Shown here: positions 15,401 to 56,249 of the stretch, in pieces
How the letters are laid out: every line of letters begins with the position of its first letter
How positions within the stretch are numbered: the stretch's first letter is position 1
NCBI GenBank assembly: GCA_964199315.1
Contig: OZ116700.1
Location: 10,912,001 to 10,976,000 of the forward strand
DNA: 64,000 bases
Direction: 5' to 3'
Source: Orbicella franksi
Lineage: Eukaryota
The notes under the pieces: generated by a model
Told to the model about the DNA's origin: nothing
The model's database searches: none
The model's input: the letters and a program-made list of their open reading frames with translations, nothing else
Position numbers and translations under genes: made by a program

Positions 15401-17562
15401 TTATTTGCAAAATGTACGCCAAGACAATTTCACAACTGTTCAATTTTTCAACCATTTATTTGTCTTTTTAGCGGCAGTTGGTTGACAGACAACATAAACG
15501 GAAGATGGTAGGAGGGGTGTTAAAATATTGGCGAGCCGTTTGATCAGCGCATATTGCACAAAAGCCAATCGCAGCATGTCAATTGTTTGCGATTCGCAGC
15601 TGGTACTTAAAATCAGACACCGGGGGTATTCTAGACATAACAATTCTCCAAATTAACATTTAGCCTCTCTGAACGACGACAATTCCTGATGAAAATGCGC
15701 GTGGGTCTCATCTGAAGAAATAAAACGAACGCTTGCTTCCCGTGGTTGTATAGAGTTTAAACTTAAGAGTATATGGCACTTAGACATTGCTGTCTCAACC
15801 TTGCAATACGAATAAATCGAGCTGATTCTGTGATTTAATAAGTCTTTGCGTGTTGCTGAATATAGGAAATTTCAACTCAGTGGCGTACTGCGCTAAGATT
15901 AATTTTTAATCTCAAACAAGTGGCCGTGGCAGCTCACTCTAATTTATGCTCCTAAATTACAAGAAAAACGAAAGATGTTATTGTTCTTTCAATGTCAGGA
16001 TTAAATACTTTTTGATAATCTGGAGCATGACGGAGGGAAAAAAGGTCTAGGAATATTAGGGACATATCCAGTAGTTTGTGTCCCTTCGAATTAAACTGAA
16101 AATAAATGTTTTGGTAAAATTGTAAAATTCAAACTAGTTCGGGCTTTGAAAATGTTGAACGAGAATACATCTATGTATTAGTACGAAGTGTAGTTTACAG
16201 AGTGTAATTGAATGATTGCGAAACGCAGAAAATTCGCTATGGTTTCGTGTCTGTTTTATTTTGCCAAACAGAATGGAGTTATCAGAATTCAGCATTTCTA
16301 ATATTCCAATAGATAACAATAATTTGGATGATGGCTTCGGAGATTACTGCAGCATCGAGTTCTTTTAACATGCGTTTAAAAATCCCAGTCCGCGCAAAAC
16401 ACAAAATCTCGTAAATGACTGAATCTAAGTACCCAGGCCGCAGATTTCTATCCAACAAGTCAGATTCCTGTTTATGGAACTTCACGTTAACGACTGCCGA
16501 CCCGACCTAAGTTTTGACGCTTTCGTTCTAACAGTTTCAGTCTCGTTAATATAAAACCTCCTGTAAACCATAAATATGATATACGATAAACTGAAAAATG
16601 CCACGTTCTTGTCGACGCAATACGAAGGGCACCATATTCGATTGCAGTGCTGTGTATTCGCAGATCCAACAACTTTCGTTGAACATTAAGATTATGGTTA
16701 CAAGTGAAAGACTCTATATCTAAAAATGAACCTGCACCTTCCACAGGAAACCAAAATTACTGGATAACGCTATCGTTCATAAAGTTGTATGAAAAATACA
16801 GCGATGTCTCCCAAATTAAAAGGGAAGCTGAGAAGTGACACATGAAGCACTTTTTGTTGTATGAAAGCAGAACTGTTCTAATAATATTTATGCTTTATAA
16901 ACTACTATAGTGCGCTGCCAAATGTTTGTTTAAAATTGTGGTTTGCTCGACAAACAAAGAGCTCATTACAATTTCAAGACGATTTTTTGCCTTCGGGATT
17001 TAACAGCAGGTGCGCTGGCAAAAATAGATTATAGACCCTACCTGTAGGAAGAAAGTATTTTTAAAATTACAACCCGGGGGATAATTTGTGATAAAAGTGT
17101 ATCTGGCAGTACGAAGACGCTTTGAAAAACACAACAAGAACTTTGAAATGAACTAAATTAATGGTTATCTTAAAATGAAACAGGACTGTTTTGTCTGCAG
17201 CTGACTCCCAGAAAACAGAATAGAAGTAAGAGTTTAATGCACATTAAACAGGAAAAAGCTATATTTAGCGACAGAATATAACTTTGCCAAAGCTCAACAC
17301 ATAAAACCCTACTAAGGTTGGAACCTTTTTGTCTGGGCTCTGATGATACATCTCTGATCAAATAAGTAGGAAACTACAATTGAAAACAGAAGCTGTACTT
17401 TACCAGCTTGCTTGGCCACCTATGTCAACTTTAAGTTGTTTGGATTTGTACTACTTCATTCTGCTTTTTCTTCCGCAGTTCGAGCCAAATTGGATACAGT
17501 CTCTGGATCTTGGAAAAAGGAAATCGTTTAACCACCTTAGTTGTCACTAAGTTTAACGTGTC

Positions 17563-18629
17563 TAACGCAAAATCCCACGTTTAAGACCCCCCGTTTATAA
17601 TCCTCCCGGATATACGCCCTTCTATTTGCTAACAAAGATATTACTCCGGATATAAGTCCCCCGCCCGCCCCCCCCCCCGCCCCCGGATATAAGCCCATCT
17701 AATGTATAAGTGCGTTCCTTCAGTTTTGCGTTTCTTTACAAACATCAAAATGTTTATTCGAAAGTTATAAGGCTAATAGGGTAATAGGGTAATAGCTCTA
17801 AGACTCTGTTTACAAGCAGGTAGGGTAACCCTAGTGCTAGGGTTACCCTAGCAGGCGGGTGAAAGATAGCCCGGGTTTGCAAGCAAAATTGCACAGGTAG
17901 GGTTACCCTACCACCCGGGACAACGAAATATGCTTGGCAACCGCACGCATTGCAAACAAAATGGCCGACAAGGGAAGGGTTGTGGCAGTTACTTCGATTC
18001 TGCTGTCGTTGCTGCCAGTGGTAGCTGCTTATCAGTGCCATGGAGTTTTGCTGTGTTACTTCCTCAGTTCTAGAAAGCGACAGCAAGTTGCCAGGTCAAA
18101 GGCGGCTATGGAATACAATAAAGCACTCGCCCGAATGCGACATGTAAAAAGGAGAATTATTCAACGAAGACGATTTCAAAGAAAACCAAGTCGTACGGAT
18201 CAATGGTGGAGAAACTTATTTGAGGGCAGGATGGAGGAAAGCGAATGGAAAAAAAATTTCAAAGGGTCTGCAAACAAGTAAAAAGTTGTCCCGGGTAAGC
18301 GAGTTATCCCTAGCAGAGCGTTCACAAAGCAGCTAGGGTTACCCTGGCGCTAGGGTAACCCTAGCGCTCAGCTAGGGTAGCCCTCCTGTTAGGGTAACCC
18401 CAGCACTAGGATTACCCTACCTGCTTGTAAACAGGCCCTAAATGTAATGGTATATTACTTTTAATTCGTTTCTCAGATACGTTTCATCTCGTCGTTCCGA
18501 AACATTTTTTTTGCTCCGCTTTTATGCCCCCCCCCCCCCCCCCAGATATAAGACCCCCGTTTATAAGCCCAGCCAAAACCCCTTATGAAGTTATACAAGC
18601 CCAGAGCTTTAACGTGGGATTTTACGGTA
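17563..18629. mobile_element. Tc1/mariner (Tc2/pogo-like) MITE hosting a nested Harbinger element
   Basis: Left end TA-acgcaaaatcccacgtttaag, right end ctttaacgtgggattttacgg-TA. Inverted termini of the TA|CCGTA type, with internal (GA)TATAAG(A/T)CCC subrepeats. Confidence 0.65.
17802..18438 (+). mobile_element. Internally deleted PIF/Harbinger element (637 bp) retaining the transposase N-terminus
   Basis: TIRs of about 45 bp (G..CTGTTTACAAGCAGGTAGGGTAA.CCTAGTGCT), TAA TSD at 17799-17801 and 18439-18441. ORF 17934-18281 ends in RRRFQRKPSRTDQWWRNL...EWKKNF, typical of the Harbinger transposase N-terminus, and is cut before the DDE domain. Confidence 0.85.
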
Positions 18630-20088
18630 TTTAAGAGACAAAAATATTTGTTTTTAAGATAAAATTAATTTAAAACTTCCTCCTAATGTTGAAAATTATC
18701 CTTTTCACGCTGCCATCTTCCGGAATAAAAAAAGCAAACAAAAAAGCGGGCTGCGTTTTTCACTCCCTGGGAAACATTGTATCTTATCTTTACATTGTAA
18801 AAGATTGTTCATATCTTTACATGTGAGGATATTGACTCGATATCTTCACGAAGTTTCCAATATTAGGTCGAAAGCCAGTAAACGGATCTCGGAGATCTTC
18901 GGCAAGACAAGTAAGCCTTCCTAAAAAGACGGAAATGTTCGGAAACGTTCGTGTGGCCTTCGGAAATCTTTGGAGAATCTTCAGAAAACTTGAAAATATG
19001 GTGAGACGAAACTGCTGCTGCAATTTCCATTATTTATTTAGAAGAAAAAATAATTTAATGATCGGTAGAAGTTACTCAGAATGTAGAAAGCCGATGCTGA
19101 GAGTTGCCAAGCAGCTTGTGAACAGCCTTAGATGACATGCTTGTCTCCACTTGAAACAACAAAAGACAGAGTGCTGGTACTTATTTTAAAGACAATCGAA
19201 TTCGAGGATGTTACCAGGAAGGAAAAATATGTCAACTGAATTCGCCTCCCGAGAGGGAATCTTTTTAAAGAAACTTTGAAAATTCAACCTTTATAAATTA
19301 AAATACATTCGAAAACGGGCGAAATACAAGTAAGACCAAGTAAAAGGGATTGAAATATTTTGTTTGACATAAACAAGCATTTCAATTAACAATAGCCAAA
19401 TGATTCATTTTCTCTGAAAGCGAAGTGTGATGTCATTGCAAAATATCGAATTAAATTTAATGTTATGGACAGCTTATATTTCATTTCTCGCTTGTCGACT
19501 TGATACATGATATGTTAGTTTTGCTTTTCATTTATATTTCCTTCAAGTGATAGAACTGTCTTATTTGAAATTGTGACACATTGAAACCAGTCAAATACCA
19601 TGGTACCTGAAAAGCGCGGTAAATATGCAATCAAATTGCGCTAAAATATGGTTTTAAAGTGCAAGTTTACGAAATATTTCCACAGAAGAACATGCAGAAA
19701 AAGAGAGAAGTTTTTGAATAGATTGCTGTTATATTAAAACTTCAATTTTCAGGGTTAGGAGAATATTAGTAACAACATTTTTGACCCAATGCCCGCCTGA
19801 GTTTAACTGTCAACAGGTGTCTCACTTGAATGCGCATGTGCAAAGCACGCTGACGTTAAAATAATACAAGCTAATTTCTTCAGTGAGTTAATTCAGAGAT
19901 ATTTTCACCGTTGAATTTTTGGAGGAGATTTCCAAAAAAGATTTGGATCATTCAAGGAGAAAAACTTTGTCTTCTTTAGGGAAGAGTGTTCTTCCGGCGG
20001 CAAAAAGCCAGCTGCCTTGGCGCGCGAGGGTTCCGCTAATAACATCAACACACCGAGTCAACGGAGCGTGGTGAGGTAAACTTCTCGA

Positions 20089-22591
20089 ATGGCAGGCTTA
20101 ACACGATGCTTAACCAGGAGGAAAAGAGTTATTCAGGACGAGAAAACAAACACTGAATTATCCAAATGTCTTACCACATGGGACTTAACATCCCTTGGAA
20201 TTGGAGCGACCTTGGGCGCGGGAATTTACGTTGTGTCGGGACAAGTGGCGGCCAGTATCGCGGGACCGGCAGTGATAATATCCTTTGCTCTGGCAGCAAT
20301 AACATCAATTCTCTCGGGTCTGTGTTACGCTGAATTCGGCGCACGTGTTCCAAAGACTACGGGATCAGCTTACGCTTACAGTTATGTGACCGTCGGTGAA
20401 ATATGGGCTTTTATCATCGGCTGGAACTTGATTCTGGAATATATGATCGGTACAGCTGCCGATGCTCGGGCGTTAAGCGCTTGTTTCGATTATGTTATTG
20501 GAAATGTGATAAGGAATTTAACACTAACTTACATCGGAGAGATAAATACACCTGGTCTTGGTACATATCCAGACGTGCTATCGTTTATCGTCACCATCAT
20601 TGTAACGGTTGTATTGGCGATTGGCGTCAAACAGTCTTCAGCATTTAGCACGGTTTTTAACATTTTAAACATTTTAGTCGTGATTTTCATTGTGGCAGCA
20701 GGGATATTTTTCGTTGATACGAGAAACTGGACGGAAGGAAAAGGATTTTTCCCGTATGGAGCTTCAGGAGTATTAAGTGGGGCAGCGACTTGCTTTTACG
20801 CGTATGTTGGTTTCGATATAATAGCTACAACGGGTGAGGAAGCTAAAAACGCTCCTAAATCGATACCTGTTGCAATTGTCGTGTCACTAGTTGTTATTTT
20901 CGTGTGTTACTTTGGAGTTTCTGCTGTGGTAACATTGATGATTCCGTACGATCAATTGGACAAGCTTTCGCCAATTCCTAACGCGTTTGTGCAGAGAGGA
21001 TTTCCTCTCGCTAAATATATCATAGGTGTGGGCGCGGTTTGTGGCCTGTCCTCGAGCCTCTTAGGCTCTCAATTTCCCCTTCCAAGGATCATTTATGCCA
21101 TGGCCTCAGACGGATTGTTCTTTAAATCATTCGCTAGCGTGAACCCTAGAACTGAGGTCCCTGTTGTTGCTACGGTGTACCCAGGACTTCTAACGGCCGT
21201 CATTGCTTTACTGTTTGACCTAAGCGAGTTAGTCGAGATGATGTCTATTGGGACATTACTTGCGTACACTTTAGTGTCCCTTTGCGTTTTGATCCTTCGC
21301 TACCAGCCCGATGTTCCCGAGGACCCCTCCTCGATGCCCCTGTTATACCTTGAGGAAGACAAAGAGGATGCCTATGGAAACCTTTCGTTGTACGATGATT
21401 ACGCACAGGACGAATGGGACTACGAGATTTCTACAAATGGAAAGATACACAGTCCAGAAGCTCTGAAAAACTGGATAGAAAATTCAGACGAAGATATATT
21501 TCGAGACGAATTTACAAAAACGAAAAGAACACACGAGGGACTACTAAAAAATAGAACGAGGCAAGGTCCCACAGCGGAAAGCTTCCGCATAGTGAATTGG
21601 GCAGTAGCCTTATTGTTTATCTCGTTCATAGGATTTTGTACAGCAATTGTTTATGGCTTGGATGCTCTGCAGAGACACAGTTACGTCATTATCATGTTCC
21701 TTGGCATTTTTGGAATCCTTAGCGTGTTCGCCATTATTGTGATCTGTCTGCAGCCTCAAAATACCAAGGAGATATCGTTCAAGGCGCCTTTTGTGCCGGC
21801 TCTGCCAATCCTTGCCATCTTTTTTAACGTGTTGCTGATGTTGAAGCTCTCTAGACTTACTTGGATCCGGTTTGGAGTGTGGATGGGCTTAGGTTTGTAC
21901 GTCATATACCCTTTACTGAATAGTCCTTCATGTGAGAGTGTAGCTTTTTCAGTATAAAAAATCGAAACATCCGGGGCCGCGGTTATTTTATGCTCAGTGA
22001 CGTTGCTAGGTAACAGGCTCTCGGCTCTTACAGGTAGAATTAACAGAAAACATAAATAGACCTTTATATGAGGTCGAGGCTGAACATTAACCACGTTGCT
22101 AAAATTACTTGGCAGTTCCTACTCAATTTTCCTTGCAGATCTCCATCCATACATATTGAATTACCAACCCTTGGATGAATTCCTTTTTACTTCCTTCATT
22201 GACGTGGTTACCTAAATGACGGATCAGTTATCCAACGATGTTTGAGCAAAAAATTAATCAGAACGCCTTATATTACGAAATAGCTATACCACACTAATCT
22301 GGAGTTGTTCAGTAGTCACCAGTAAAAAGCAGATATATATATATTTCTGGTTTCATTTCTAAACTGTTTTTCCTCCATTCCACAGGCACGTTGTTATATC
22401 TTGGTTACAGCCTCTGGAATAGCGAAGAAAGATACAGAACGCCTCAAGGACAGCTGAAATTTGACAGACAAGTTCTTCTGGCCGACAACTTCGACAGTGT
22501 GGACATTGAGTATGAAATGGAAACAATTCCGGCCCATAGAAACGACATGGACATTTTTCCACCCAGTCCGTTCAAATGGGACAGCTTATAA
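20089..22591 (+). CDS. SLC7A14: SLC7A14-like probable cationic amino acid transporter, join(20089..21892,22386..22591), 669 aa
   Basis: APC-fold CAT motifs ([32 protein letters not shown]). SLC7A14-type VPKTTGSAY, EYMIGTAA, long acidic loop after YQP, and C-terminal LWNS. Phase-1 donor at 21893 and acceptor ending at 22385 give WMGLG|TLLYLGYSLWNS. Confidence 0.85.
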
Positions 22592-25030: not shown

Positions 25031-26886
25031 TTATTGATAATGTTCTGGTATTCTCAAATACCTGCAGCACTTTATCTCATCAAAAGAGGTCTCCATGGAA
25101 GTTTGATTTTCTTCTAAAACTTTTTCTTCTTGTTGTTGCTTTTGGATATCGATTTCAAGGATAGCGGTCTGAAATTGCGTTTGGCTCAGTGGGACGATAG
25201 TAGACAAGGTATGAAAACATTTTGATTTTTTCAATGGTTCGGTAATTTCTCGAAATTCGACCGGCTTGTTGGAAAAGGCTGTTACATTGCTTAAGGTTTT
25301 CTCATATTCTGGCATAGATGATGTTCGGGATCTGGCGCTGAGTCTCCTCAACGTGCAGGGCGAATTGACACCTGGAGCCAGAAATGTTTGCTCTGAAACT
25401 TCACCATAGGGAGGTTTTGTTTCGAGATTCCTCCAGTCTGCCATGCTTAGGTTCCTACCCTTAGCATTTTCTACCTTCATGGAATATTGAAATTCCGGCT
25501 GGATCTCAGCAAAGACAATATTCTGACCCTTGTTTTGGTTTTCTTGTAGCTCTGTGTCTGTTCCAAAGTCAGCCTGATATAAAGGTTGCTCGTTACTCTC
25601 TGGCTTTTGCAGAAGCGGCTTGGAAATACTCCGGTTCCTGTTCATTGAAGCTCCTCTCCAGCCTAATTTCCGTGCTTGGAAAGCTTTCTTTTCATCTACG
25701 CCACGAGAGTCTGTACCACTTGCCTCAGCTCTCTTAGATTGTGGAGTTCTGAGGGCGGCGAAGTCGTTTATACTGTCATAATCATTGCTATTGGTCTGCA
25801 ACTTTCTTAAGCACGACACGTTTCTTCCTCGCCGAAGAACAGGACTACAACTATTCGACTGCAGTTTGGGTGATGAAGGTGTCGCCTGCACTCCCTTCTC
25901 TTTAGGAGTGGTTTCTTGCTCAAAAGCTTTCATTGTCAATTTTTTTGTCTCTTGTATTCTGCCCCCAGAGTTGTCAGCCGCAGCAGCCCTTGAGTCAGAG
26001 CTATTATCGGAGTCGCTAGTATTTTGTCTAATTTTGTTTAAACACGACAAGCTTCGTGCTCGTTGAAGAACAGGGCTGCGACGAGTCGACAAGAGCTTAG
26101 GTGATGAAGGATTTGAGAAGGGCGTAGGTGATGAAAGTTTTTTGTTTGTCCTCTGGAGTTATTTCTTGTTTAAAAGCTTGACTTGTCAAGTTTTTTGTCT
26201 GAAAAGCTTTTTACGTTTTGTCGCCAGACTGGTGGACCACTGCAGCCCTTGCATCAGCTTTTTTCAGGTTTGGTAGTCTTAGGTCAATAAAGAAAATACT
26301 TTTATTTGCATCAGTTGCATTATTTGGCGCTTTGTTGAAACGGGGAGAGCTTTGTCCTCGTTGAAGAACAGGGTCCCTACGATGCCAGTGCAGTTTTGGC
26401 GACGAGAGAATACCATTGGGAATGATGTCTTTCCAATTTGCCTGCATTGTCAAGTTTTCAGTTTGCGAAACGTTCTGTATTTTGCCATCGGACTGCTCGA
26501 CCGCTGCAACACTTACATCAGCTCTCTTTGGACTTTGGCCGGCTTTGGGAACATTGTTGATATCGAGATCTGTGATGTTATTTGCTAATTGATTCGAGCA
26601 GGTTAACCTTTTACATCGTTGAACTGTGGGAGATGAAGGAACCCCGAGCATGGGTGAAGTACAGCCAAGGAGAAAATTTCCCTCGTTTTCAGCATCATTT
26701 TTCACAGTCGGAATACAAAGAAACTGTATATTTTGAATTTCAGGTGTGTCTTCTTGAAGATGATTGATAGGTGTCAGTAAGTAGCCCGGAAGCAGCCAGG
26801 CACACCAAACAGATGTTGGACATTGGACTAAAATTTTCACTAAATAGTTTTCTTCTTGGTCTGACAATATTAACTAGTTGATATCT
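25031..26886 (-). pseudogene. Degenerate terminal exon of a Ser/Pro/Arg-rich tandem-repeat protein ending in CRYLR; its 5' part lies beyond the LINE at 33864-33912
   Basis: ORFs 26867-26211 and 26092-25031 share about four SSPKL..SPVLQR repeat units and are separated by an in-frame TAA (26211-26213) and a 1-nt frameshift. C-terminal FDEIKCCRYLRIP parallels YQELEHCRYLRLP at 36.9 kb. Confidence 0.65.
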
Positions 26887-41805: not shown

Positions 41806-43052
41806 TAGTTACAGAGAGCAGCCTACAAATAGTTACTGCCACCGCGACTGGAGACGTGTGCGTAGACGTTGCTTTTAAAAGCATGTCATAAAGAAATGGG
41901 ATCATTCCAGTTTGTACCCATTGAATTCATACAGCAAAAAATTAAGAAAACGTTTTTTCACCTTTATATAGTTATATTAACACCGAAAAGCCCAATCGGG
42001 GATGAAAATGCAATTTGTGTTGTATTATTGGAAAGGACGCTTAGCTGGAATGGAGCGGGCGCCGAATGGAAATGGGCGCTCTTATTAGCAAAGGTAAGGT
42101 TTGCTGGAATACAGTGGCGCTGGAAGACAATCAAACGGGGCGCTTATTAGAGATTGGTTAAATTGTGAGGATAATGCTAAATCGACTCTTTGCAGGTTAT
42201 GTCAATGCACGTATTTTAAGTGAAGAAAATGGAACGAATATAGTTAGTGATTGTATTTTATTCAGCCTCGATACTAACTTAACAGTGTAGCACAGTGATA
42301 TGGTCTGACTGAGCTCAAGTCAATACTGACGATCTGTTAATTTACATCTATTTCTTTTTTTTAACATCTGCACATTAATATAATAATAACATAACGATGT
42401 ATACTACTTTATCGACTATGTTTCCTATGTTTATCATGATGTTTATGTTTAGTTTCGTCATGTTAGCTCATATTGACATATCCTTAGTCACAACGCTATG
42501 AATGATGGGAAGGAACACTTTAAAGTCTCGTTATTCAGTTTTGTAGGCGTTCTTCTTTCCCTTTCGTTTATCTTCCCCTCATCTTATAATTTTCTAAATG
42601 CAAGCAAATCATACTGTTCTTTCAAGGAACATCAGTTAAAAAAAGAATGTAGATTGTGTCTCGGTATACGCTTTATATGTCGGTCAACCGACAAACATGG
42701 AGAGAGGATGACCTGAATGGGCTCAGAAGAACGATCGCCGAAGACCTCTTCTGAGGTTGTCCTCGGTGATTGCCGTTAATTTGGTTCCTTTCCAGGTAAG
42801 GTCTCAAACGACTTAAGCACGAGGGCCAAAAGTTACGCGACTTCCATGTTTTTAACGAGCAACTTTCAAATACGGTGGTCTCACGTAAACATGTGCAAGA
42901 GATCAAGTTCAAAAATTCAAAAAGTCAGTTCAGAGAAAAACAGTTAAATAAGTTTTTCGGAAATAAGTCTTTAGAATATTGTCACTGGAGCTCACAATTA
43001 ATTAACTTACGTTCTCTAGATATAATCTCTATTACATTTATAATTTCTTTAA

Positions 43053-43198
43053 TTAATTCTTCGGTTCTGGAGTTTCGCTGCCCTTTTCTTGATCTCCTTT
43101 TCCATCGATTTGTTCTAAAGGGACGTAACCCTCTTGTTCTGTTTGCCGCTGGCCCTCGACGCTGTGACGAAGGCCATAGAAAATGTAAATAGACAAGC
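43053..43198 (-). CDS. CAT locus terminal coding exon (last TM and cytoplasmic tail), the only one found for the minus-strand cluster
   Basis: Acceptor ttatcttacAG at 43200-43199. Phase-1 reading (G)LSIYIFYGLRHSVEG...PEPKN* is the canonical CAT C-terminal motif. Confidence 0.88.
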
Positions 43199-44317
43199 CT
43201 GTAAGATAAAATAACAGAAGATGTTAGAAGACACTTCAAAAAAAGGGGAAAACTCGCCAATTTTAAATATTGTATTTATAAGCCAACAAGGAAACTACGT
43301 TGCAACTTAGAAATTTCCAGTCTCAATCATTTAAGTTAGTCGATCAAAAACCGTTTTAATCTTTAATCGTATCCACCATTTAAGTTCTTTTTTTATTTGT
43401 TATTTACGCCCGGTCTATGTTGTTTTTCTACCTTAATAAGTTTTAATTTTGAGGTTTCCTTCAATTGCTAAGTCGAGAAAATAACTTCGTACATCGTGAT
43501 GTGACAGCCTTTTTTAAAAGTTACCAACGACTCTAGATTGCGTTACTGTTTTGTCTATTGGTGAACTTCACCTGCTGACTAAATGACTTTACTATTAAAT
43601 GACTTCACCTGCTGACTATTAGCTAACTAAATGTAAAATGATGGGTACAAATGAAATTGTTGTTGTTGCTGCTGCTGAAAGTATGTCTTTACCATAATAA
43701 TCTACGCTATAAAACAAAGGGTGGTTAACACGCGCCCGGTATTCAGTCCGAAGTCACAGGCAAACCAGTTTAACAAATTGACGTCAGTTTTTCATGCGTA
43801 TGTCCTGTTTTGATCATGAATTTCGTCATAATATTGTCAGAGTAGCCGTGGATCGACGAGGCGATACCCGAGTGGATACGCATCGAATAAATTATAAATT
43901 CATGTGTCGGTCCGCTTTTTGCCAATGAAAATTAGCCAAAGAGCGCGCGAGAATTTTCGCAGTTATCGTAAAACAGTATTTCGCAGAGCCCCACAGATAA
44001 TGCTCGATGAGCTAATCCTCGAGAAAAATATATGACGAAGGCTATTAATGCGTCACAGTTTTTGATTAGTCGCCGAATAAACATGGTTTCAGTTGCCTGT
44101 GCAAATGACATTCACACAATCATAACAACCAGTCACCGGATTCATTAAGGCTTTTTAGATTAAGATCGCTCGTAAGTATTTGTTCGAATACAAAATACTA
44201 CTGTTAAGAAGCAATGGTTAGGATGCATCTTAACAAAGGAGGGCTTCGTAATTTCTATGTTATGCTATGTACGTATTGCGTGCCTATATTATATTGAAGC
44301 GATGAGAAAGTACACAC

Positions 44318-45923
44318 CTATCGCCATCCAAACCGCGAAACGCATCCATGTCGCCGGATTGAGTTCCATCATCAAATAAATATTTATAAACATTGAACAG
44401 AGAGGCAGGCCAGGAACGAGCGGAACTTTGAAAGGCAGCGGTGTCAGACTCTTTGGCTGCATACACAACGCAACAATGGCGGCTACGAAAATTATGACTA
44501 AAAACGTCGCTAGAATAACAGCCCACGCCTGGCCTTGATACATTGGAATAAGCCCGTTGATCAAAAACGCACTAAGACAGAAGAAATAAAAGAACAGGAA
44601 CCATATCGTGCATCTGGAAATAGTCCCGGATCGGTCGGTTGGTTCAGGTAGAGGGTCCTTCGATTGGGGACTCAAATTAGGGTCCTCTTCGTTGTATTTG
44701 ACAAGACCTATTGTTCCAGGCTGGTACCGGAGAATTAGAACAGACGTGGAGACAATGGTATATGCTTGAAGCGTCCCTATCGACATCATCTCCACAAGGG
44801 CTTGCAGTTCAAAGACCATTGCTAGAATGCCTGCCAGAATACCCGAGAAAAGTGTACCAATATATGGTACCTCGGTTCTTTTGCTCACGTACGCGAAACT
44901 CTTGAAAATCAAGCCGTCTGAAGCCATGGCGTAAAGCAAACGAGGCAACGGGAAAAGTCCGCCATTTATGGCCGCTGTCATTCCGCAAAGTGCGCCAGCC
45001 GCGATTATGTACTTTGCAAAGTTCGCTCCGCGGTGTTCGAAAGCTTTAGGTAAGGCTGCTCCATAATCCAACTTGTCATAAGGCCAGATTAAGGTAACAG
45101 CAGCTGAAACGCCAAAATATGCCAGAAAACAAACTGTGAGCGCAAATAAAATTGAAAGTGGGATCGTCCTGCTAGGGTTCTTAGCTTCCTCGCCGGCAGT
45201 CGCAATGACATCAAAACCAACAAAAGCGAAAAATGCGGTGGCGGAACCCGCTAAAACCCCGGTAGGTCCATACGGCATGAAGTCTGACCAGTATTCTGGT
45301 CTGGCCAAGGTAATTCCCATAATGATTATGAACACAATGACAACCATGTTCACACAAGTCACACCGAAAATAAACGTGGTAGATTTCTTGACACCAAACA
45401 GTTGAATGATCATCAAAATAAGAATTATCCCCACTGCCAAAAAGTCCGGGTAACCCCCGAGTCCATCAATCCGTATTGGTCCAATATTTTCAAGAGTCCA
45501 ACCTCTAACTTTATCGTGTAACATGGAGTCAAAATAAGCACTCCACGCTCGACCAATGGCGGCAGCTCCGATCATGTACTCCATAACAAGATTCCAACCA
45601 ATTATAAACGCCACTAGCTCGCCGACAGTCACATAGCTATAGATGTAGGCTGATCCAGCTTTTGGGACTCGGGCTCCAAATTCAGCGTAGCAAAGTCCGG
45701 ACAAGACTGAGGCAATACCAGCGATTAGAAATGAGATAACTGTTGCTGGGCCTGCCACATCGCGAGCGATTTCACAAGCGATCACATAGACGCCGGCGCC
45801 AAGGGTACAACCGACTCCGAGGGCTGTTAAATCGAGGAGTGAAAGACACCGGGATAATTTAGTCTCAACTAAACTCTGGATGGAGATGCATTTTCGTCGA
45901 GAGAATTGCCGAAGACAGCCCAT
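44318..45923 (-). CDS. CAT (SLC7A1-4-like) cassette C, a single large exon; with 43198..43053 gives 583 aa
   Basis: MGCLRQFSRRK...LGAGVYV...[16 protein letters not shown]...FVGFDVIAT...FPLPR...MMSIGTLQAY...WMAIG. Phase-1 GT donor at 44317. Confidence 0.92.
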
Positions 45924-46758
45924 TTCTCATAAACAATAAAATGAAGCTAACGTTCGGCAGATGACACTAGGCAACATTAACGAGCTACCGTAAATTTCTG
46001 AAGGCTTGAGGATGGTTGTAATTTTGTTCTCGGAAACCAGAGAGCCATGTTAAAAGCGGCGAATCTTGTTATTTGTCAGATCCAATCGGTAATTTCAGTG
46101 CTGACGGCCAAAAGATGCCTTTATGATTACAAGATGCTTCAGGCTCATCGGTGACCTCTTTAAATATTCCACATCTGTCGATAAGTTCCTCTAAACTATT
46201 TTCACGCACTGACAGTGACAGTTAGTTATAAGAATTTATGTCTAGATCATAACACCCTTTCAGAGCTACAGGTCATCTTGTCGCCCGCCCGCTTGGCTTG
46301 AAACAATGATTCTAGGAGAAGTTACATTTCAATAAGAGAATTCGACATCATCTTATAGTCGGCAGAAATCGCTACACTGGTTTCAACAGGTGCCGTTGCA
46401 GGTAAAAGACAACTACGCAAGGTTTTACAAGTTCTAGTGCTGTTGACAAAAATGGCTATCAACCTGCGAGAGAAATATAATGCCTTGGAAGTTCTGGTCC
46501 GAGATTTGAAAAAAAAACTAATAATAGTAACAGTAAAAAACAAAGAAAGTTTCCTTAAGAACTTTTGTTGATAAAAAATTTAAGCTAATCGTCAGTCTGG
46601 TTGCTATATTCTTTTGTGTCTGATTTTATTTCACTTGATATAATTTACAGCTCGGCTAACTAGTATTGTTTCTAGAACAGCGATACTAGACGATTAAACG
46701 ATTAATTGTAAAACGTTTGTCCCTCTCTTTTTCTTCAAAAAAGCAGCGCGTGGTTTAT

Positions 46759-47325
46759 TGCGCATGCGCAGTCGATGGACGCAGACATTTACGACGGAAT
46801 CGAAAGTTACAAATCAAACGATCAAAATTTTTATCGCAAACTTGACACATAATAGCTAGCATAGCATATTTGGTTAAAACTATCCGGAAACAAGAACGCA
46901 ATAGAGCTATATTGAAAATATTGTACCACAAGTGTAAAGTGAAACAAGCTCTGTCATATATATGAAAAATAAAGTTCAAGTTTGATGTCGTGTTGTATGA
47001 GCCGAGAGAAGGTTAGCATCTCCCTCGATAAGGACGAGAAAAGTCTTCGGACTTTCAACCTACAACACATGGTTAAGGCTTTGCCACATACTTCGTGGCA
47101 TCTAACCAATTTTTTTTGGAAACACTGTATCGTTTAGACTTCAAAAGTTTTTTTAACTTTGATGACATCTTTAGGTTGGCTTTAATACATTGCTTGGCTA
47201 ATCAAAGTCAATTACCAACAGGCGGTAGCTTGTTCTTTGTTTGAGTGAAAATTGCAAAATCAGCAAACTGATTTAAGAAAATGACGTAACTAACGGCCAT
47301 GATTCCTCGGCAACGTGCTTTTATA
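46759..47325 (-). promoter_or_regulatory. Candidate internal promoter for CAT cassette C
   Basis: Perfect NRF1-type palindrome TGCGCATGCGCA at 46759-46770, TATAAAAG on - at 47325-47318, CRE-like TTACGTCAT at 47289-47281. Motif-level evidence only. Confidence 0.4.
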
Positions 47326-48005
47326 AAGCCCTAAGGTTCTTAGCTATCAAAAAGTCACGAGTTCTTGATAAACTACCTCCACCAACGTATCTTCCATTCA
47401 ACACAAAAACAACTGGAAGTTATGGTTTGAAGTGTAACAACAAATGTTTTCAGCACTGAATCTGGACTCTGAAATAGCTTCATCGCCAACAACATATTAG
47501 CAATTTTCAACCTGTGACCATAAATTAATTTTTTTCTGCCTCCCGGAGTTCCCACCTCTAGCCTTTCCTAAGTTCTCGAGAGAAAAAAAAATGAAAAGTT
47601 TGGCTTGCTCTCGTCCAAGATGTGACTTTTATCTTAAAACTGGGAAGTTGCTACGAATAAAAACAACTACCCAAAAACAGGTGAACACCGCGTAGAAACA
47701 TAAGTAGAGAACCAGGAAAATATAATAGATAAATTGAATAAATGCTACGTTTAGGAGTAGATGTGTCAACTTCCCAAAATTAACCGTTTTAACAGACTAT
47801 CAGTGGTTGCATACATTATTAAAATTAATGTTGAAATATTATTATTGATTCTACTCTACAAAAGTGGCTATCGCTGTTGAAATTATTCAATTTTTTACTG
47901 AAAAGTAATGGAAGGCTTCGTCTTTTAGCCAACATTTCTAGCCTGGGCCAGCTATAAACAAAGCCATCGAAAACCTCTTCTACGTTTATCCACCGTAGTA
48001 CTCAC

Positions 48006-48625
48006 CTATAGCCATCCAGACAGCAAACCGAAGCCACGTCAAGTAATTTAGCTTCATGATAAGAAATATATTGACGAATATCGAGAACAATGGTATGGCT
48101 GGAACACAGGGCACTTTAAATGGAATGGGCGTCTTGTTCTGGGGCTGACGCACAAGGAGCACTACAAACGTTACCAGAAAAATCCCTAACAGACACGCCA
48201 TGAAAATGGCCCATGCTCGTCCCTTCAAGATGGCTTCACCGCCCCAGATGAGAAGGGTACTAATGAAGAAGTAGATGGCAACGTTGCAATAGATTCCTAT
48301 GGCTGCGAGCCGAGCTGTTTGAAGAGTGGGGCCATTATTTTCTGCTGTCAGTCTAGTGTGTTCCATCGCTGCCTCTCCTTCCACGTTTTCGTCGTTGCTT
48401 GAGAAGATATTTTCCTCTCCTTTTACAATGCCTATGCTGCCAGGCTGGTAACGCAGCAGCAACACGCACAGGGCCACTATTGTGTAGGCTAGCAGAGTAC
48501 CAATGGACATCATTTCTACCAACGCTTGAAGGTCGAATACAAGAGCGAGAAACGCAGCTAGGGCCCCAGAGAGGACCGTAGCGATAACTGGAATCTCTGT
48601 CTTGGGATGCACTTTGGCTAGAAAT
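48006..48625 (-). CDS. CAT locus internal exon 3 (shared by cassettes A and B)
   Basis: Acceptor at 48627-48626, phase 2 (K)FLAKVHPKTEIP...MMSIGTLLAY...WLRFAVWMAI(G), phase-1 GTGAG donor at 48005. Confidence 0.92.
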
Positions 48626-49072
48626 CTAAAGAAAGATTTGGAATGTGCATGATCAACGAGTGTAATGCTTCCATGAACAGGGACATTTATGAAAGAAAAG
48701 GTTTCTTCGCAGCGTTATGCCATTTGAATTGATTGAGACATTAAGTAGTTGGAACAGGGCAAGTTAGATACTGTATAAAGGACTTTAATTCTAGCTCACA
48801 AAATTTCGACTACTCAGTTTTTCCACGTAAAAGTAAAACATAGGAAAATGTATTTAGAAGTTAGAGCTCATCTGATTATGTTACTGAAAAGATTTTGTTC
48901 AAGATTGATTTTTTTGAACACCTAACAGCCGCCTTTATAATTATAGCGACTTACAGTGAGAGTTTTAAAATTCTACTTTGTGGAGTGAACCCCATAAGAA
49001 AAAAATCAAAATATAAATAATTTCATTTTCGGAGATTCATCAAGTGTTAAAGAACTTCTCGCTTTCGCTTAC

Positions 49073-49307
49073 TTGAAAATGAGGCCATCGCTTGCCATGG
49101 CGTACAGCATTCTGGGTAAAGGGAACAAGGCTCCAATCAAAGAGGCGCTTAATCCACAGAGGGCTCCGACAGCAATGATATATTTGGCCCACTCGGCTCC
49201 TCTCATCGCAAAGACCTCAGGAAGGGCGCTTCGTTCGGATAGCTTGTAATATGGCCACATCAAAGTCAACACAGCGGACACTCCAAAATATGCCACAAAA
49301 CAAATAC
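49073..49307 (-). CDS. CAT locus internal exon 2 (shared by cassettes A and B)
   Basis: Acceptor at 49309-49308, phase 1 (G)[19 protein letters not shown]...[17 protein letters not shown](K), phase-2 GTAAG donor at 49072. Confidence 0.92.
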
Positions 49308-51554
49308 CTTTAAAAGAAACAAGAAACGCTCGTTTACATCGAGCTCCTTTCATTTTTTGCGAGTATAACATTTTACTGTAAACAGAAAGCGGTATTAAAG
49401 TGTATTTTGCCAGGGATTATTGCGTCTAACAGACATTTAGGAATCAGAATAGAATTTGACTTGATGCCCTACTGAGAGGTGGCGGTCTCCTAGGAAAGGT
49501 GGTAATTTTGGACTGTTTGACATTTTTAACGGTCTCTAACGAAAACAGATGAGCATGGTGAGGCAAGTGAACACGTGGAGAATTCACCTAAATGGGCTGT
49601 TTTAGTAGCTGACAAAGGCTAATACATAAGTTAGTTTGTGAAAGCAGCTGGATTAGTTTTGGTTTGTTGCTTCAAACTGCTAAAAAGCCGGCAAAATTAC
49701 ATCCCGAGTGAACTGTCATGATTAGTAAGTGTTATGTACATGTAGGATCAAACGGAACTAGGCCTAAATGATTACAATAATTAGAGATATACAAAAGGTT
49801 TATTGTAGCGGCTTATACGGCTCACTGGTAGATCATTAGTGTAATGACAGCTGTAAACCCTCGTTTTTAAAGAAAGATGATGAAACGGCAGGCAAATCAG
49901 CAAGTCAAAAAGCGGAAAAACACGTCTCAAGGAATTAAAGACCGTAGATTTTCACCGTCGCAGACACTGTTGTTGGCAAGCTTGCAATGTTGATTTCTAT
50001 CTCTACTCCTTGCATTTTAATTCTTTCATTTGCTATAATTTTGCGGGATACTAATCGATATTTTTTCCATTCCCAAATTTCCAACGGTTTATTAGACCGG
50101 AATTGCGCGAAATTTATATTGTGTATTTATAATATACATTTATGAAACTGTTACATGTGTTCTTAGGCTATCATGAAACATATGAACTAAACATAAGGAA
50201 AAAGTTTAACCTAAACTAGAATCTCGACATTAAGTTCACGTTAACCATCTGTCACTTTCAAGAGCTTGTTTAGTCTTACATACGTGTAGTTTAACGTCAT
50301 GGTCCCACGCATCTGATACGTGTTTTGCTTATTCCTATTGATTATGAAACATATGTATTAAAAACAGGAACATGCAATATAATACATGCAGCAATATGAA
50401 ATAACCAGGATATACAGAAGGTGCCAATATCTGGGTAATAACGGCTGATCCCAGTAATACAAATCTATGAATTTCACTATCGAACATATAAACGATTTTG
50501 GAATTATAGAATGGAACGCTGGGTGGCAAATTGAGTGCACCAGCACATGCAAATTAGCTCTCAACCTGTTCCAGGACAATCTACATTTCTCTCCCTAGCC
50601 AACATATTTGTCCTATTTCCTCTTTTCTCCTTATAATAGCTTTATCTGATCGCTGTATTTACCGTCAGTTTAACCTTAGTTTGTTTTCTATTGTGTATAA
50701 GTAACCTTCACAACTTTTTCATTCATCTTTTGTCCGGCCATTATAGGCCACTTTCTGCTAAATAAAATCTCGGAAAAACAAAAAGGTAATATTAGTGCCA
50801 GAAAACGTTTTCATAGCTTCTGTAAAATTCGTTCAGTGATGATATGTTTTAAAGCCTGATCGGAATTGCTTGATAATTTCATCGGAAAGATAAACCTAGA
50901 ATGGCCACCTATACCAAGTGATAAAACTGCATCAAAACAAAAGCTAATTAAAAGAAGATGGGCTGAAAGTGGAAAATATATAAGCGATAGAAAGACCAAT
51001 TGCTCGATCAAGATGGAGACAAACGTTCTAAAAAAATGTCGATTTACATTGATCTCTTCGAAACAGTCAATTAATATAAATTGTCACTTGGTTCCATTTT
51101 GGCATCATATCTACTGGTGGACACAGGTGTCCAGCTCAACGGCTGGTAAAATCAGTTTAACGAGGAACGCACGATTCATCAGGATAAACCAAGCTCAGAT
51201 GATTCATGCCGATCAAAAAGCACTTTAGAGATTTGGTTTATGGTTCCGACTAATGTATTATTCAGATGGAAAATTTCCTATGGTAATTGAGCAACAAATG
51301 GAAACCGCGTGGCTGGCCAAGGCGTACTTAATTGTTGTTGAATAGCGTAAATTATCGCCAATATCCACGTCCTTGAGAAATATTTACTCACCGAAAGAGA
51401 AACAAATAAAATGAAGAACCGAAAAATATCAATCGTTGCATAGATTTTCCCACGTGTCAAAGTGGCGAATTTTAATTCAGACATTGTTGATTTGGCTAAA
51501 ATTGGTCTATGTGCAAAACAAATTTGGGTCGTAATATAAATGACTACATCTTAC

Positions 51555-52374
51555 CTAAGGCCAGAACTATTGATACAGGTATGGCTCTGCTTGGATTTCT
51601 AGCTTCCTCGCCGGTAGTAGCAATTACATCAAAGCCAACAAAAGCGTAAAAGCAAGTGGCGGCACCCGAGAAAATCCCAGATATCCCAAACGGCGCAAAA
51701 TCCCGCGTCCAATTCTCGCCCTTTGCGAAGTACAACCCGACACAGGTTATAAACATAATCACAAGTAAATTTATGCCGGTAAATATATTGTTGAATCTAG
51801 AAGAATTTTTCACTCCTATCACAAGGATGAAAGTTACCAACAACACGAGGAGGAAGGCGAAGAAATCTGGATAACGTGAAAGTCCCGAGACATGCATCTC
51901 GCCAATGTTCGTCAGCGTGTAGTTACGAATTCTGCTGTTGAGAACAGAATCAAAATATTCACTCCAAGCTCGAGCTACGGACGACGCGCCAATGACATAT
52001 TCTAGAAACAAGTTCCATCCGATCACAAAAGCACACAGTTCGCCCACAGTAACATAGCTGTAGACATAGGCCGAACCAGCTTTTGGGACCCGAGCGCCAA
52101 ATTCAGCGTAGCAGAGTCCCGAGAGAATCGAGGCGACGGCGGCTATGAAAAACGAAATTACAATGCTTGGTCCGGCGATCGAGCGAGCCACTTCTCCTGC
52201 TAAAACGTAAATTCCAGCCCCGAGAGTACTTCCAGTCCCTAGAGCGGTCAAATCGAAAATCGACAAACAGCGAGACAATTCGCTTCGTGACAGCGATTTC
52301 GGATCGATGAGTTTCTTTTGGGTGAATCGCCTCACCAGGTAGGCCATCTTCGGATGCGCAATCCCTTGAACCAT
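51555..52374 (-). CDS. CAT first coding exon, cassette B (N-terminal half); full isoform 606 aa
   Basis: ...RRFTQKK...LGAGIYV...[16 protein letters not shown]...[13 protein letters not shown]...IVLAL(G), phase-1 GTAAG donor at 51554. Confidence 0.92.
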
Positions 52375-54443
52375 GAATTAACCTGTTTTTATTGTTTTTC
52401 AAGAAAATCCTTCGCATCGGCGTTCTTCAGGAAATGAACAGCACTGACTAGACGGCCAACCTTAACTGACTCGTGGACATCACGGCTTTCATGCGAAGTT
52501 TTTCCTTGTTCTCGCTGCTGATGTTCTGTACGCCGATGAACTCGTTAGCTTTTTAAATATTCCGCTTGTTTTCTTGAAATTATCCGGCAGTTCTCGAAAC
52601 TGAAATATCGGTCGTGTCATGTCCGCGTTGATAAACAGTTTCATTCAGTTTCGTCGACTCGTTCCAAGTTCATTTAGAGCCTGCGTTGGTTTGTGGGAAA
52701 TTTGAAAGCGAACTTTTTTGGCTTTTATTTAATTTCTCGAAATTATAGCATAAATTTTTAGGATAAATTTTAAGAAAAATGAATATATTGACCTCAGCCA
52801 CAATAAAAAAGAAATAAGTGCCCACATATCTGTCGCTCATCTTGATGACGCCAAAGAAGATTAGACGATCGCGACGTTCACCATGAGAACAGCCGGCTGA
52901 TTGTCTACAAATACATTTTTTGTTTCAATTTTATCCAGGATGAACACGAAATACGAATAACTCTTGTTGTCCCTCCCGCCACGATAGCGAATTTCCGCAT
53001 TATGAATCAAACAAAGCGCAGACAGAAAATTGTCTGTAGAATGTTTATCAGTGCGTCTAGAGTTGCTCCTCTTTCCTGTCAGACCGTCGCGCGTGACACG
53101 TAATTAAAGAAAGCGCGAGAGGGAGAAAGCGCGCGGACGAAAATGAAGCATTCTCTTTTTGCGCTTTCTCGCTTCGCGGGGAGACAACAATCAGATGTGA
53201 GTTGAACAGAAAGCAAATCCCTAAGACCGGTTAACATGAACTGAGGTAAGCACAGGCGCATGGATCCATATGATGTTCGGCCTGCCATCTGATTGGGGAA
53301 GCACAGCTAATCAAGGTGAATAGTAGTGTTCGCTCTTTTTGAAAGAGTACTCCGTAACTACTAAATTAAATGGAAATTTTGAAAGCTTAAACGACAAAGG
53401 GAACGGTCTACTCTAGCTTTTACTTAGCTTAGGACATATTAAACCGGCTGTGCCGATACAGCTGCAAAGTGACTATTTTTAACCTAGCTTGTTTTAGGCT
53501 CACAAATTGTAGAGATTGAGGAAGACTAAGAGCGTTTAACTGGTAAAGGTATAAAAAGACATGCAAACCGAGCCAGTCCTCCTATATCACGGATTATATA
53601 AGATCAAGCAGCTCCCAACTTGGTACAGTGTATTGGCGAAAGTCGGCCCCATCAACTCCATCCTCTTGGTAATTTAGTATTGATTTTTTGTTATTTTGTA
53701 CCCTCATGGAGTGGACAATTGTTTACTATTTTAGCCTCAAGGTCCAAATAAACGAAATTTAATAAGAAAAACAAAATTAAACCATAATATTATACAAGGT
53801 TGCAAACTGACCAAGTTATTATGATATGCCATCCCTAACTGACCTATACAATGACATGTTTCTATTTTTTTCGGTTTTTCGAGCCAGTTAAGAGAAAAAG
53901 GGTAGTCCAAGATCGTTATCACATTTGACAATCATGTTATGTCTATAATGAACCAGGGCCAAGCCGTACTCAGGCCGAGGTGAATCAGTGCTAAACATCT
54001 CTAGATATCGCTGGTTAGGCGGTGATACCGTATTTTATCGGTGACTGCCCGGGTACACATTACATATTTCAAGTTTTCTTTCGTTTATTTCCGCAAGTTA
54101 AACCGTGCAGTTTCATTTTTTTTTTTCTGTATTCAGAGGTTATAAACTGCTTTCCGTCACAGGCTATAAACTGCTCTCCGTCTCTTGCTTTACAATTTTA
54201 ATCAGTCAGTGGCTTTTTTACAGGAGAAGGGGTGGGCTTAATTCTTTTCTTATTTATATTTTATGACTTTAAGGGGCACATGTGAAACTATCGCCTACTG
54301 TACATTAATTTAAAATTGCTAAAAGTTATTTCAATTTATAGATGTCATAAATTTTTAACCGATGGCCGAATGAACAGCCCTTCTCTTAAGGTATTGACTT
54401 TCTTCTCTTCGGTACAAACGACAAATGTATAATATTTCCTTAC

Positions 54444-55242
54444 CAATAGTGAGTATAGTTGCCACAGGCACATCCTTCGAAGGATTATTTGACTCTTCCA
54501 CAGCGGTTGCGATCACATCGAATCCAACAAAGGCGTAAAAAGCTGACGCCGAAGCAGCCAGTACTCCGGAGAAACCAAACGGTAAAAAATCATCCGTCCA
54601 GTTCTTTTCCTCGGCAAAAGAGGCTCCAAGTATTATAATTAATACTATGACAACAATATTTATGGCTGTTATGACATTTGTTGTCACTGAGGTTAGCTTC
54701 GCTCCGAAGCACAAAGTCACTGTTACGACTAATATGAGAAGAAACGCCAGAAAGTCCGGATAATGTGCAATGATTCCCGACGCGCTAAGTTTTCCAATTC
54801 CCATTGTGGTTGTATTTCTTATAATGTCGTTTAGCAACGAAGCATCAAGATACGAACTCCACGCTCGAGCCACTGAAGAGGTCGCTATTATGTATTCAAG
54901 AAGCAAATTCCAGCCGATCACGAACGCGCAGAATTCACCTATGGTGACATAACTGAAAGTGTACGCGGAGCCGACTCTGGGAACACGCGATGCAAACTCG
55001 GCGTAACACAAACCAGCCAGTATGCTTGCCACTGCTGCGACGAAGAAGGATAACACCAGCCCTGGTCCTGCTACATTTCGCGCTAATGTTCCAGTTAAAA
55101 CATAAATCCCTGCTCCGAGAGTCGTCGCGACTCCGAGAGAGGTTAAATCAAACTTGGTCAAGCAGCGAGATAACTCTGTTTTATGTATGACACTTGTATT
55201 TATGAGTTTCTTCCTGCTTAAAATTTTCGAAAACCGCTCCAT
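54444..55242 (-). CDS. CAT first coding exon, cassette A (N-terminal half); full isoform 599 aa if spliced to 49307
   Basis: MERFSKILSRKK...LGAGIYV...CYAEFASRVPRVGSAY...FVGFDVIAT...TILTI(G), phase-1 GTAAG donor at 54443 at the same protein position as cassette B. No downstream CAT exons in 52375-54443. Confidence 0.88.
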
Positions 55243-56249
55243 CTTGGGTCAGTGTTCGCCTTCAATTATCAAAGTTCTTGGTGTTATTGCCGCCTCACAA
55301 GTCTTGCCACTCAAATGGTAACATCTGTGTCATATTCAGCTGTCTTCGTTGATGTACAAACTGTAAAAAAAAAAAAATAGCCAAGCAATTAAACTGCCAT
55401 AAATTATTGTCAAAGGAGTCTTTCGGCCACTCTGTTGAAAACACTTTAGCTTGATGCTGTCAGCTTCCTTTCAACTAGTTTTACAGTCGGTTATTCAAAA
55501 TTCAAATTTTCTTTGTCATAGGGTTTTGATTAATGCAAATTTAGGGCGGGAAGTTTCCCGCCAGTTCAAATTCATCAGAACGGAAACCTAAACAAGAATT
55601 ATATATTTCCCAAAATATCGCTGAGCTTCTTATCTGAGTAAGTACTTTTTTTTGTCCGCAAATTTGTGAATTTTTCATGTATAGCTTTACATTATGTGAT
55701 CATATTTAAATTAATTTTTAATGATCATAGAATCATCAGCTAGCAATCAGAAGAAAACGAAAACCTTTTTGAAATTTGCATACATCAGTGTTGAAAAGCT
55801 TTAAAAGGATCCCTCAGAGTAAACCATAGAATATCTAAACTATGTTAGTCATAAATTCAATAAGTTTATGTACGTTGCTGATTTGACAAATAAACTTCTC
55901 GATAAATATTTGATGGGCACGATTCTTGACCGTTGTATTCAAGGTTCCTTTTACGTTTACAGTGAGTTTAATTATGCATGTATTGGGGGCATAAGCAATC
56001 ATGCGGACATTCACCCGAAACCTTGAGGTTTGCTTTGATCATACCCAACCTATCGCAGTAGGCATTTGCCGGTCTAAACAGTCACTACCGGTACACGAGA
56101 ACGACATCGCCTGAAAACGTAAGTAGTACTTTTTTCAAATTGCAAATAAAATAGAGAAAACAAAGAAATAAGCGAAACAAATAACAAACAAACAAAACAG
56201 TGATTTTCGCTCATCACCATCCGCTACATTTTAACGAAAATACTTACAA

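Follow-up and report, generated by a model that had tools for sequence, protein, structure and literature searches.

Loci in which alternative first exons are spliced to one constant set of downstream exons are best known from UGT1A and the clustered protocadherins (alpha and gamma). Among the cationic amino acid transporters (CATs) of the SLC7 family, the established switch is of another kind: vertebrate SLC7A2 makes CAT-2A and CAT-2B through mutually exclusive internal exons, which exchange a segment of about 42 aa that sets affinity. Here we describe a CAT locus of the coral Orbicella franksi, found in a stretch of 64,000 nt (GenBank assembly GCA_964199315.1, contig OZ116700.1, positions 10,912,001 to 10,976,000 of the forward strand; hereafter the window, whose own numbering we use). 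Three ATG-bearing cassettes (A, B and C), two shared exons (S1 and S2) and one common terminal exon (T) lie there on the minus strand. We consider, with a probability of nearly nine in ten, that they form a single two-tier array of variable and constant exons that encodes three CATs with 14 transmembrane helices (TM1 to TM14). A first-pass annotation made from the sequence alone had likened the locus to UGT1A and the protocadherins, and junctions seen in RNA bear this out for layout and splicing.

According to the proposed mechanism, transcripts starting at A or B would carry TM1-TM6 and would use the first available donor to reach the sole S1 acceptor, both then running on through S1 and S2, from TM7 to the middle of TM14. 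In the second tier, the donor of S2 or that of C would be joined to T, the sole terminal exon, which would complete TM14 and add the tail. In transcripts begun further upstream, B and C would be plain intron; this skipping is proposed because no upstream exon joined to B or C appears in the data.

Splice junctions and exon layout

All five predicted junctions (A>S1, B>S1, S1>S2, S2>T and C>T) are present in RNA. The JGI contig L001 (3114 nt, sample 3300008040) carries A>S1>S2>T in four blocks that match the window at 99.2-99.8% (55625-54441, 49308-49073, 48625-48005 and 43203-42122), and a second JGI contig, L007 (sample 3300008045), contains the same three joins. Bases 1-62 of L007 lie on an optional non-coding leader exon (Table 1), after which the contig continues at 55360 to 54441. 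The C>T junction is carried by contig L002 (2876 nt), which covers 47078-44317 and then 43200-43083. This contig was found by scanning metagenomes for the junction sequence of any exon with T; the scan returned only L002 and missed L001 despite the pattern in L001, so absence from it means little. A 62-nt probe over the C>T junction was detected in 5 RNA runs from 3 studies, and in one further run with half of its words, a weak sign in that two words were sampled.

For the first tier, four RNA runs were aligned on 49073-55072, three of them as assembled contigs. The joints 54444>49307 and 51555>49307 both occur in runs X2 (2024, polyA) and X5 (2017), with GT..AG ends on the minus strand, and in both runs the depth of S1 is about that of A plus that of B. 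Words of the B exon were found in 14 RNA runs from about ten studies. No joint from A to B was found in the contigs of three runs on 49073-55072, contigs being prone to drop rare forms. The four junctions that the first-pass annotation had singled out for checking are thus all in RNA: 54444>49307 in L001, L007, X2 and X5, 51555>49307 in X2 and X5, 48006>43198 in L001 and L007, and 44318>43198 in L002, to which the 62-nt probe adds weakly. The outcomes that it had named as fatal were not observed, neither a lack of the 54444-49307 and 48006-43198 joins nor another terminal exon after 48006, of which there was none in the contigs examined, the read alignment covering 49073-55072 and not 43-49 kb. 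One contig of run X1 (depth 17.5; 53971-55072, minus strand) passes the A donor at 54444 and covers about 470 nt of the intron behind it, which could reflect either a retained intron or an A-only transcript with a different 3' end.

The coding sequence (CDS) of cassette A has 799 nt, that is 266 aa plus 1 nt, and covers TM1-TM6 and the start of TM7. Cassette B, with 820 nt (273 aa plus 1 nt), is paralogous to A (57% identical), ends at the same aligned residue and has its donor at the residue homologous to A's. Cassette C, with 1606 nt (535 aa plus 1 nt, a phase-1 end), runs from TM1 to the first half of TM14; this single exon spans the region that the upstream unit splits over S1 and S2, and its donor lies at the same residue and in the same phase as that of S2, ...WMAI(G), phase 1. 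The terminal exon encodes the second half of TM14, then a 34-aa tail and the stop. Joining the parts gives three open frames: 599 aa for A-S1-S2-T, 606 aa for B-S1-S2-T and 583 aa for C-T. The A and B products differ only over their first 266 and 273 residues, respectively, and the C product has only its last 48 residues in common with them. Exon arithmetic thus agrees with the earlier claims that A and B end at one protein position with phase-1 GTAAG donors and that all three joins are in frame.

No further CAT exon was found in 42-56 kb by tblastn with the three products (word size 2, E up to 10), including the intervals 52375-54443 and 45924-48005, which supports the earlier statement that the cassettes have a single downstream exon set and that none lies in 52375-54443. 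The CAT terminal motif [FY]G..[HN]S has one match in the whole 64 kb window in a six-frame scan, at 43190; the scan thereby sustains the claim that 43198-43053 is the only terminal exon. As a positive control, the same motif recovered a private terminal exon in a paralog on another contig, 1.2 kb past its S2-like exon.

Table 1. Features of the CAT locus and its surroundings, in window positions
Feature	CDS or exon	Full extent	Strand	Description
Leader exon, optional	56308-56248		minus	61 nt, non-coding; canonical GTAAGT donor; joins the acceptor at 55360 upstream of A
Cassette A	55242-54444 (CDS)	54444..55625	minus	ATG-bearing CAT (SLC7) 5' exon; phase-1 GTAAG donor
Cassette B	52374-51555 (CDS)	51555..52685	minus	ATG-bearing CAT 5' exon; phase-1 GTAAG donor
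Shared exon S1	49307-49073		minus	235 nt; rest of TM7 and TM8; acceptor for A and B
Shared exon S2	48625-48006		minus	620 nt; TM9 to first half of TM14; ends WMAI(G); phase-1 GTGAGT donor
Cassette C	45923-44318 (CDS)	44318..47078	minus	One exon, ATG-bearing; inside the S2-T intron; GTGTGT donor
Common terminal exon T	43198-43053 (CDS)	42122..43198	minus	146 nt CDS; TTACAG acceptor; 3' untranslated region (UTR) to at least 42122
Tail encoded by T	43053-43150		minus	34 residues
Serine-rich open frame	25031-26092		minus	353 aa; between the fourth CAT gene and the array
Fourth CAT gene	20089-21957		plus	Intronless, 622 aa; outside the array

Protein products, conservation and related genes

The A isoform matches the Pfam families AA_permease_2 (PF13520; 3e-44) and AA_permease_C (PF13906; 2e-22). 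Both families are also matched by the open reading frame of C, and cassettes A and B, taken by themselves, cover positions 1-226 of the PF13520 profile. Solved structures of human CAT1 (9fqt, 9uat) match at E 3e-153 over residues 10-569. The products are accordingly classed as 14-TM transporters of the SLC7 CAT subfamily, which would be expected to carry arginine, lysine and ornithine. Exon boundaries were mapped onto the helices by hydropathy, Pfam and alignment to human CAT1; hydropathy gives 13 peaks per product, the helix below threshold being TM1 (with the GxG motif) in A and B and TM9 in C, and helices were placed by eye. On this map the boundary between A or B and S1 falls five residues into TM7. 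The boundary of S2 or C with T cuts TM14 midway, near position 38 of the AA_permease_C profile (51 positions in all), of which T supplies about 39-51.

The choice between A and B is an exchange of TM1-TM6 on identical TM7-TM14. The earlier idea of swapped binding halves therefore fits A and B; it does not fit C, which replaces everything from TM1 to mid-TM14 and keeps only 48 aa in common. Similarly, T had been taken for an identical cytoplasmic tail, and the 34-aa tail is indeed common to the three products, but T also supplies the second half of TM14. Every hexacoral sequence examined has Y-[VI]-P-L-[EQ]-[QR] in this tail, Orbicella, Nematostella and Actinia included, and in a tail alignment the motif is absent from the hydrozoan gene considered below, the stand-alone coral paralogs and the fourth CAT gene of the window. 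The motif may be a tyrosine-based sorting signal of the YxxPhi type. A common tail would give the three transporters a common trafficking signal, and the alternative TM1-TM6 halves would be expected to alter substrate kinetics or selectivity.

The first-pass annotation had suggested looking for the same layout in related genomes, and it is present in two anemones. In Nematostella vectensis (L003) tblastn places the parts at 10001-10804 (A), 12772-13578 (B), 14171-15064 (S, here one exon), 17065-18684 (C) and 19346-19558 (T), with donors at the same residues and in the same phase 1 as in Orbicella; the annotated 618-aa and 604-aa products have one end coordinate and an identical 70-residue tail. 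The locus of Actinia tenebrosa (L004; 8.6 kb) repeats the five parts in A-B-S-C-T order, again with phase-1 donors. Among corals, the A-, B- and C-type sequences of Montipora have the same tail, and another relative provides a 604-aa B-type product (P0050) on a contig of 1966 nt, a length that indicates derivation from mRNA. The isoforms X2 and X3 of Porites lutea (P0070, P0093) show 100% identity beyond residue ~267, as against 55-88% over the part that precedes it; both cassettes are A-type and sisters in the tree (93/88), which points to a cassette gained in the Porites lineage. In Mercenaria, Ruditapes and Branchiostoma, the bilaterian 'isoform X2' pairs show no such block of identity with divergence on one side of it.

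Trees recover clades spanning both orders for the A type (100/99), the C type (98/96) and the S exons (95/93). Together with the layout in anemones, these clades indicate that an array with all three cassettes predates the split of anemones and stony corals. Anthozoan diversification is placed at about 550 Ma by Yoshioka et al. (2021, PMC7850063), who cite Park et al. (2012). In the N-half tree, the C type is joined by a hydrozoan gene (P0087; 94/88) of exactly the same structure, in which an intron at WMA.|G separates a single body exon from a terminal exon of its own; the 10 kb upstream of this gene contain no CAT cassette. This indicates that a body exon plus T is the older state. A single hexacoral clade was not rejected by the approximately unbiased test (p 0.15). 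The A/B-S unit may have arisen by duplication of the body exon in place, without ever having a T of its own, or it may be an older paralog that lost its own T and took that of its neighbour.

Several other CAT genes were observed. A stand-alone paralog in the same genome (L008; G000:C6:2867700-2873477, minus strand) has the N|S1|S2 exon structure of the B-S unit, but its S2-like exon is followed 1.2 kb further on by a private terminal exon (GMSIYLFYGLRHSVEGERQR*). This paralog falls within the scleractinian stand-alone clade (P0051, P0053 type) that is sister to the S exons, and it suggests that the B-S-T form was once duplicated as DNA. We rejected the idea that the stand-alone scleractinian paralogs are retrocopies of B-S-T mRNA, as the Oculina gene spans 9.7 kb and the copy in the present genome keeps its N|S1|S2|T introns. 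Three tandem stand-alone paralogs of 583 aa in Oculina patagonica (L006) have termini that each differ slightly; they are an ordinary tandem duplication, unlike the shared-exon array. About 0.9 Mb from the window, at least 8 CAT-like matches, with 36-50% identity to the A isoform, are spread over both strands of the region G000:C3:11841239-11927692; internal stops interrupt some of them. The fourth CAT gene of the window has its own short degenerate terminus (...GLYVIYPLLNS...) and groups with Hydractinia P0118 in two trees (100/99 and 98/95).

Transcription starts and alternative explanations

The leader of B is unspliced and about 310 nt long. In each of three contig runs it stops at 52661-52685, in one case running into adapter sequence, and the stretch 52873-53272 further upstream has no cover; nor do loose ends or joints enter B in the contig runs on 49073-55072. 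Cassette B thus has its own 5' end and an independent transcription start. The leader of A has two forms, one contiguous to at least 55625 (L001) and one spliced in at 55360 (L007), so that A is the first exon in L001 but follows a 61-nt non-coding leader in L007; an independent start for A, with two leader forms, is likely. Upstream of the C ATG, L002 has at least 1155 nt of unspliced sequence with no acceptor in it. The number of ATGs in this stretch is at chance level, as it is in the A and B leaders, which makes upstream ATG counts uninformative as a test of whether the C leader is a real UTR. Of the three separate starts that the first-pass annotation had expected, B's is borne out by the leader end near 52685 and C's was not located. 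We infer that C has a promoter of its own and that the cassette is chosen by promoter use, not by regulated splicing.

The competing view would place one promoter upstream of the whole locus and have the cassettes picked by regulated, mutually exclusive splicing. The used 3' splice site of A (55360), with its leader exon, is what lends this view substance, along with the long upstream stretch, of unclear origin, on the C transcript contig. It is nonetheless improbable in light of the B leader, which is unspliced, ends within 52661-52685 in three runs (once at adapter) and has neither cover further upstream nor any loose end or joint entering it, and of L002, which lacks an acceptor in the 1155 nt before the C ATG. 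A quite different explanation, to which we give very little credence, is that these are ordinary tandem paralogs, the S2>T joins being conjoined-gene read-through noise and the A/B-S gene ending in its intron (...WMAIGEYYGG*). Reading through the S2 donor does reach a stop after 6 codons, and unspliced contigs exist for C and, in run X1, for the A donor. However, full-length spliced contigs from two samples (L001, L007) carry S2>T, and the read-through product would lose half of TM14, with 13 of the 51 AA_permease_C positions. In addition, both the missing private terminal exon and the donor position are kept in Nematostella and Actinia, whereas the sister paralog in the coral's own genome does retain a private terminal exon.

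It is also conceivable, at a level we regard as negligible, that private exons downstream of A and of the B-S unit were lost to an assembly collapse or deletion, an outcome that the first-pass annotation had itself raised. The transcripts agree with the assembled exon order (L001, L002, L007), and the independent assemblies of the two anemones show the same layout. We found no sign of an assembly fault in the sequence either: the window contains no N, and direct repeats in 42-56.5 kb are confined to diverged coding homologies among the cassettes (61-79% identity), none of them near-identical.

Several observations nevertheless weigh against the two-tier array, or against parts of it. In the assembled contigs that carry the A>S1 and B>S1 joints, the S1 side is only 26 nt long, as is expected where two paths merge in a de Bruijn graph. 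The raw-read run X24 gave zero reads on 49073-55072, and the joints thus come from contigs. The B-S-T protein of this species did not turn up in the protein collection when this was searched with the A isoform, so that the evidence for B>S1 is that of the RNA contigs. There may be a minor alternative 3' end after S2. Finally, the start of C transcription was not located, and its 1155-nt leader could in part be unprocessed precursor.

Significance and comparison with described systems

The A-S1-S2-T product is identical to the RefSeq entries XP_020621892 and XP_020621893 of Orbicella faveolata, 'cationic amino acid transporter 3-like isoform X2', which means that Gnomon already models at least this join. 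In O. faveolata, Nematostella, Actinia, Montipora, Porites and Pocillopora, the RefSeq (Gnomon) models present the cassettes as isoforms X1-X3 of one gene; these are automatic annotations, without analysis of layout, conservation or meaning. Full-text literature searches turned up no account of exon sharing or of variable first exons for any CAT, nor for cnidarian transporters. In the passages available to us, Yoshioka et al. (2021) describe a permease gene cluster conserved from anemones to corals (Acropora and robust corals), with three clades in conserved orientation. O. faveolata and Nematostella are among the species in which the cluster is viewed. It is treated as tandem duplicates, and some members respond to native symbionts in Acropora tenuis. 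Those passages do not mention shared exons or isoforms. That cluster may be the present locus. The kind of system is known; what is new, as far as we can tell, is that such an array serves a single-fold membrane transporter, is arranged in two tiers, has its joints within helices and is so deeply conserved.

We tentatively propose, at a little under even odds, that hexacorals have kept since before the anemone/stony-coral split a promoter-choice array in which a LeuT-fold nutrient transporter is put together from exchangeable halves. One cell type, such as alga-hosting gastrodermal cells, would then use a different TM1-TM6 substrate-binding half (A or B) from another, or the wholly different body C, always on one TM14 end and one tail with the conserved Y-x-P-L motif, and cassettes would still be gained, as in Porites. 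If this is true, no such array would have been described for a membrane transporter before, and the locus would be a natural domain-swap experiment on the APC fold. The locus shows that a single-fold 14-helix transporter can be built from alternative genomic halves, with the joints inside helices, in an arrangement stable across two cnidarian orders. It offers three natural chimeras, the same TM7-TM14 with two TM1-TM6 halves and an unrelated body on the same tail, for examining which half determines CAT affinity and selectivity. The transport of arginine and lysine is relevant to the exchange of nitrogen with symbionts, and the permease cluster that holds symbiosis-responsive genes in Acropora (PMC7850063) is possibly this locus. 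Reads from the shared exons will be misassigned in expression studies, whether these treat the cassettes as separate genes or as a single one.

With CAT-2A/2B, the locus has in common the transporter subfamily and the use of alternative coding exons to change part of the fold. Here, by contrast, the alternatives are 5'-terminal ATG cassettes that cover 6 or 13.5 helices, and not internal exons with both splice sites; tblastn found no duplicated internal exon of the CAT-2A/2B kind at the locus. Compared with UGT1A and the protocadherins, the CAT array is small and uneven, having only three cassettes in two nested tiers and of unequal size (TM1-6 against TM1-13.5). Its cassette A can follow a non-coding leader exon, and promoters belonging to single cassettes are shown only in part. 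Its boundaries cut TM7 and TM14 of a single LeuT/APC fold instead of falling between domains, and only 48 aa are constant across the three isoforms. In its plan, however, it is of the same kind as these two systems: tandem paralogous 5' cassettes, each with its own ATG and with donors at a homologous position and phase, are alternatively joined to one downstream exon set, downstream cassettes are skipped as intron, and cassettes are gained in particular lineages, here in Porites lutea with its two A-type cassettes.

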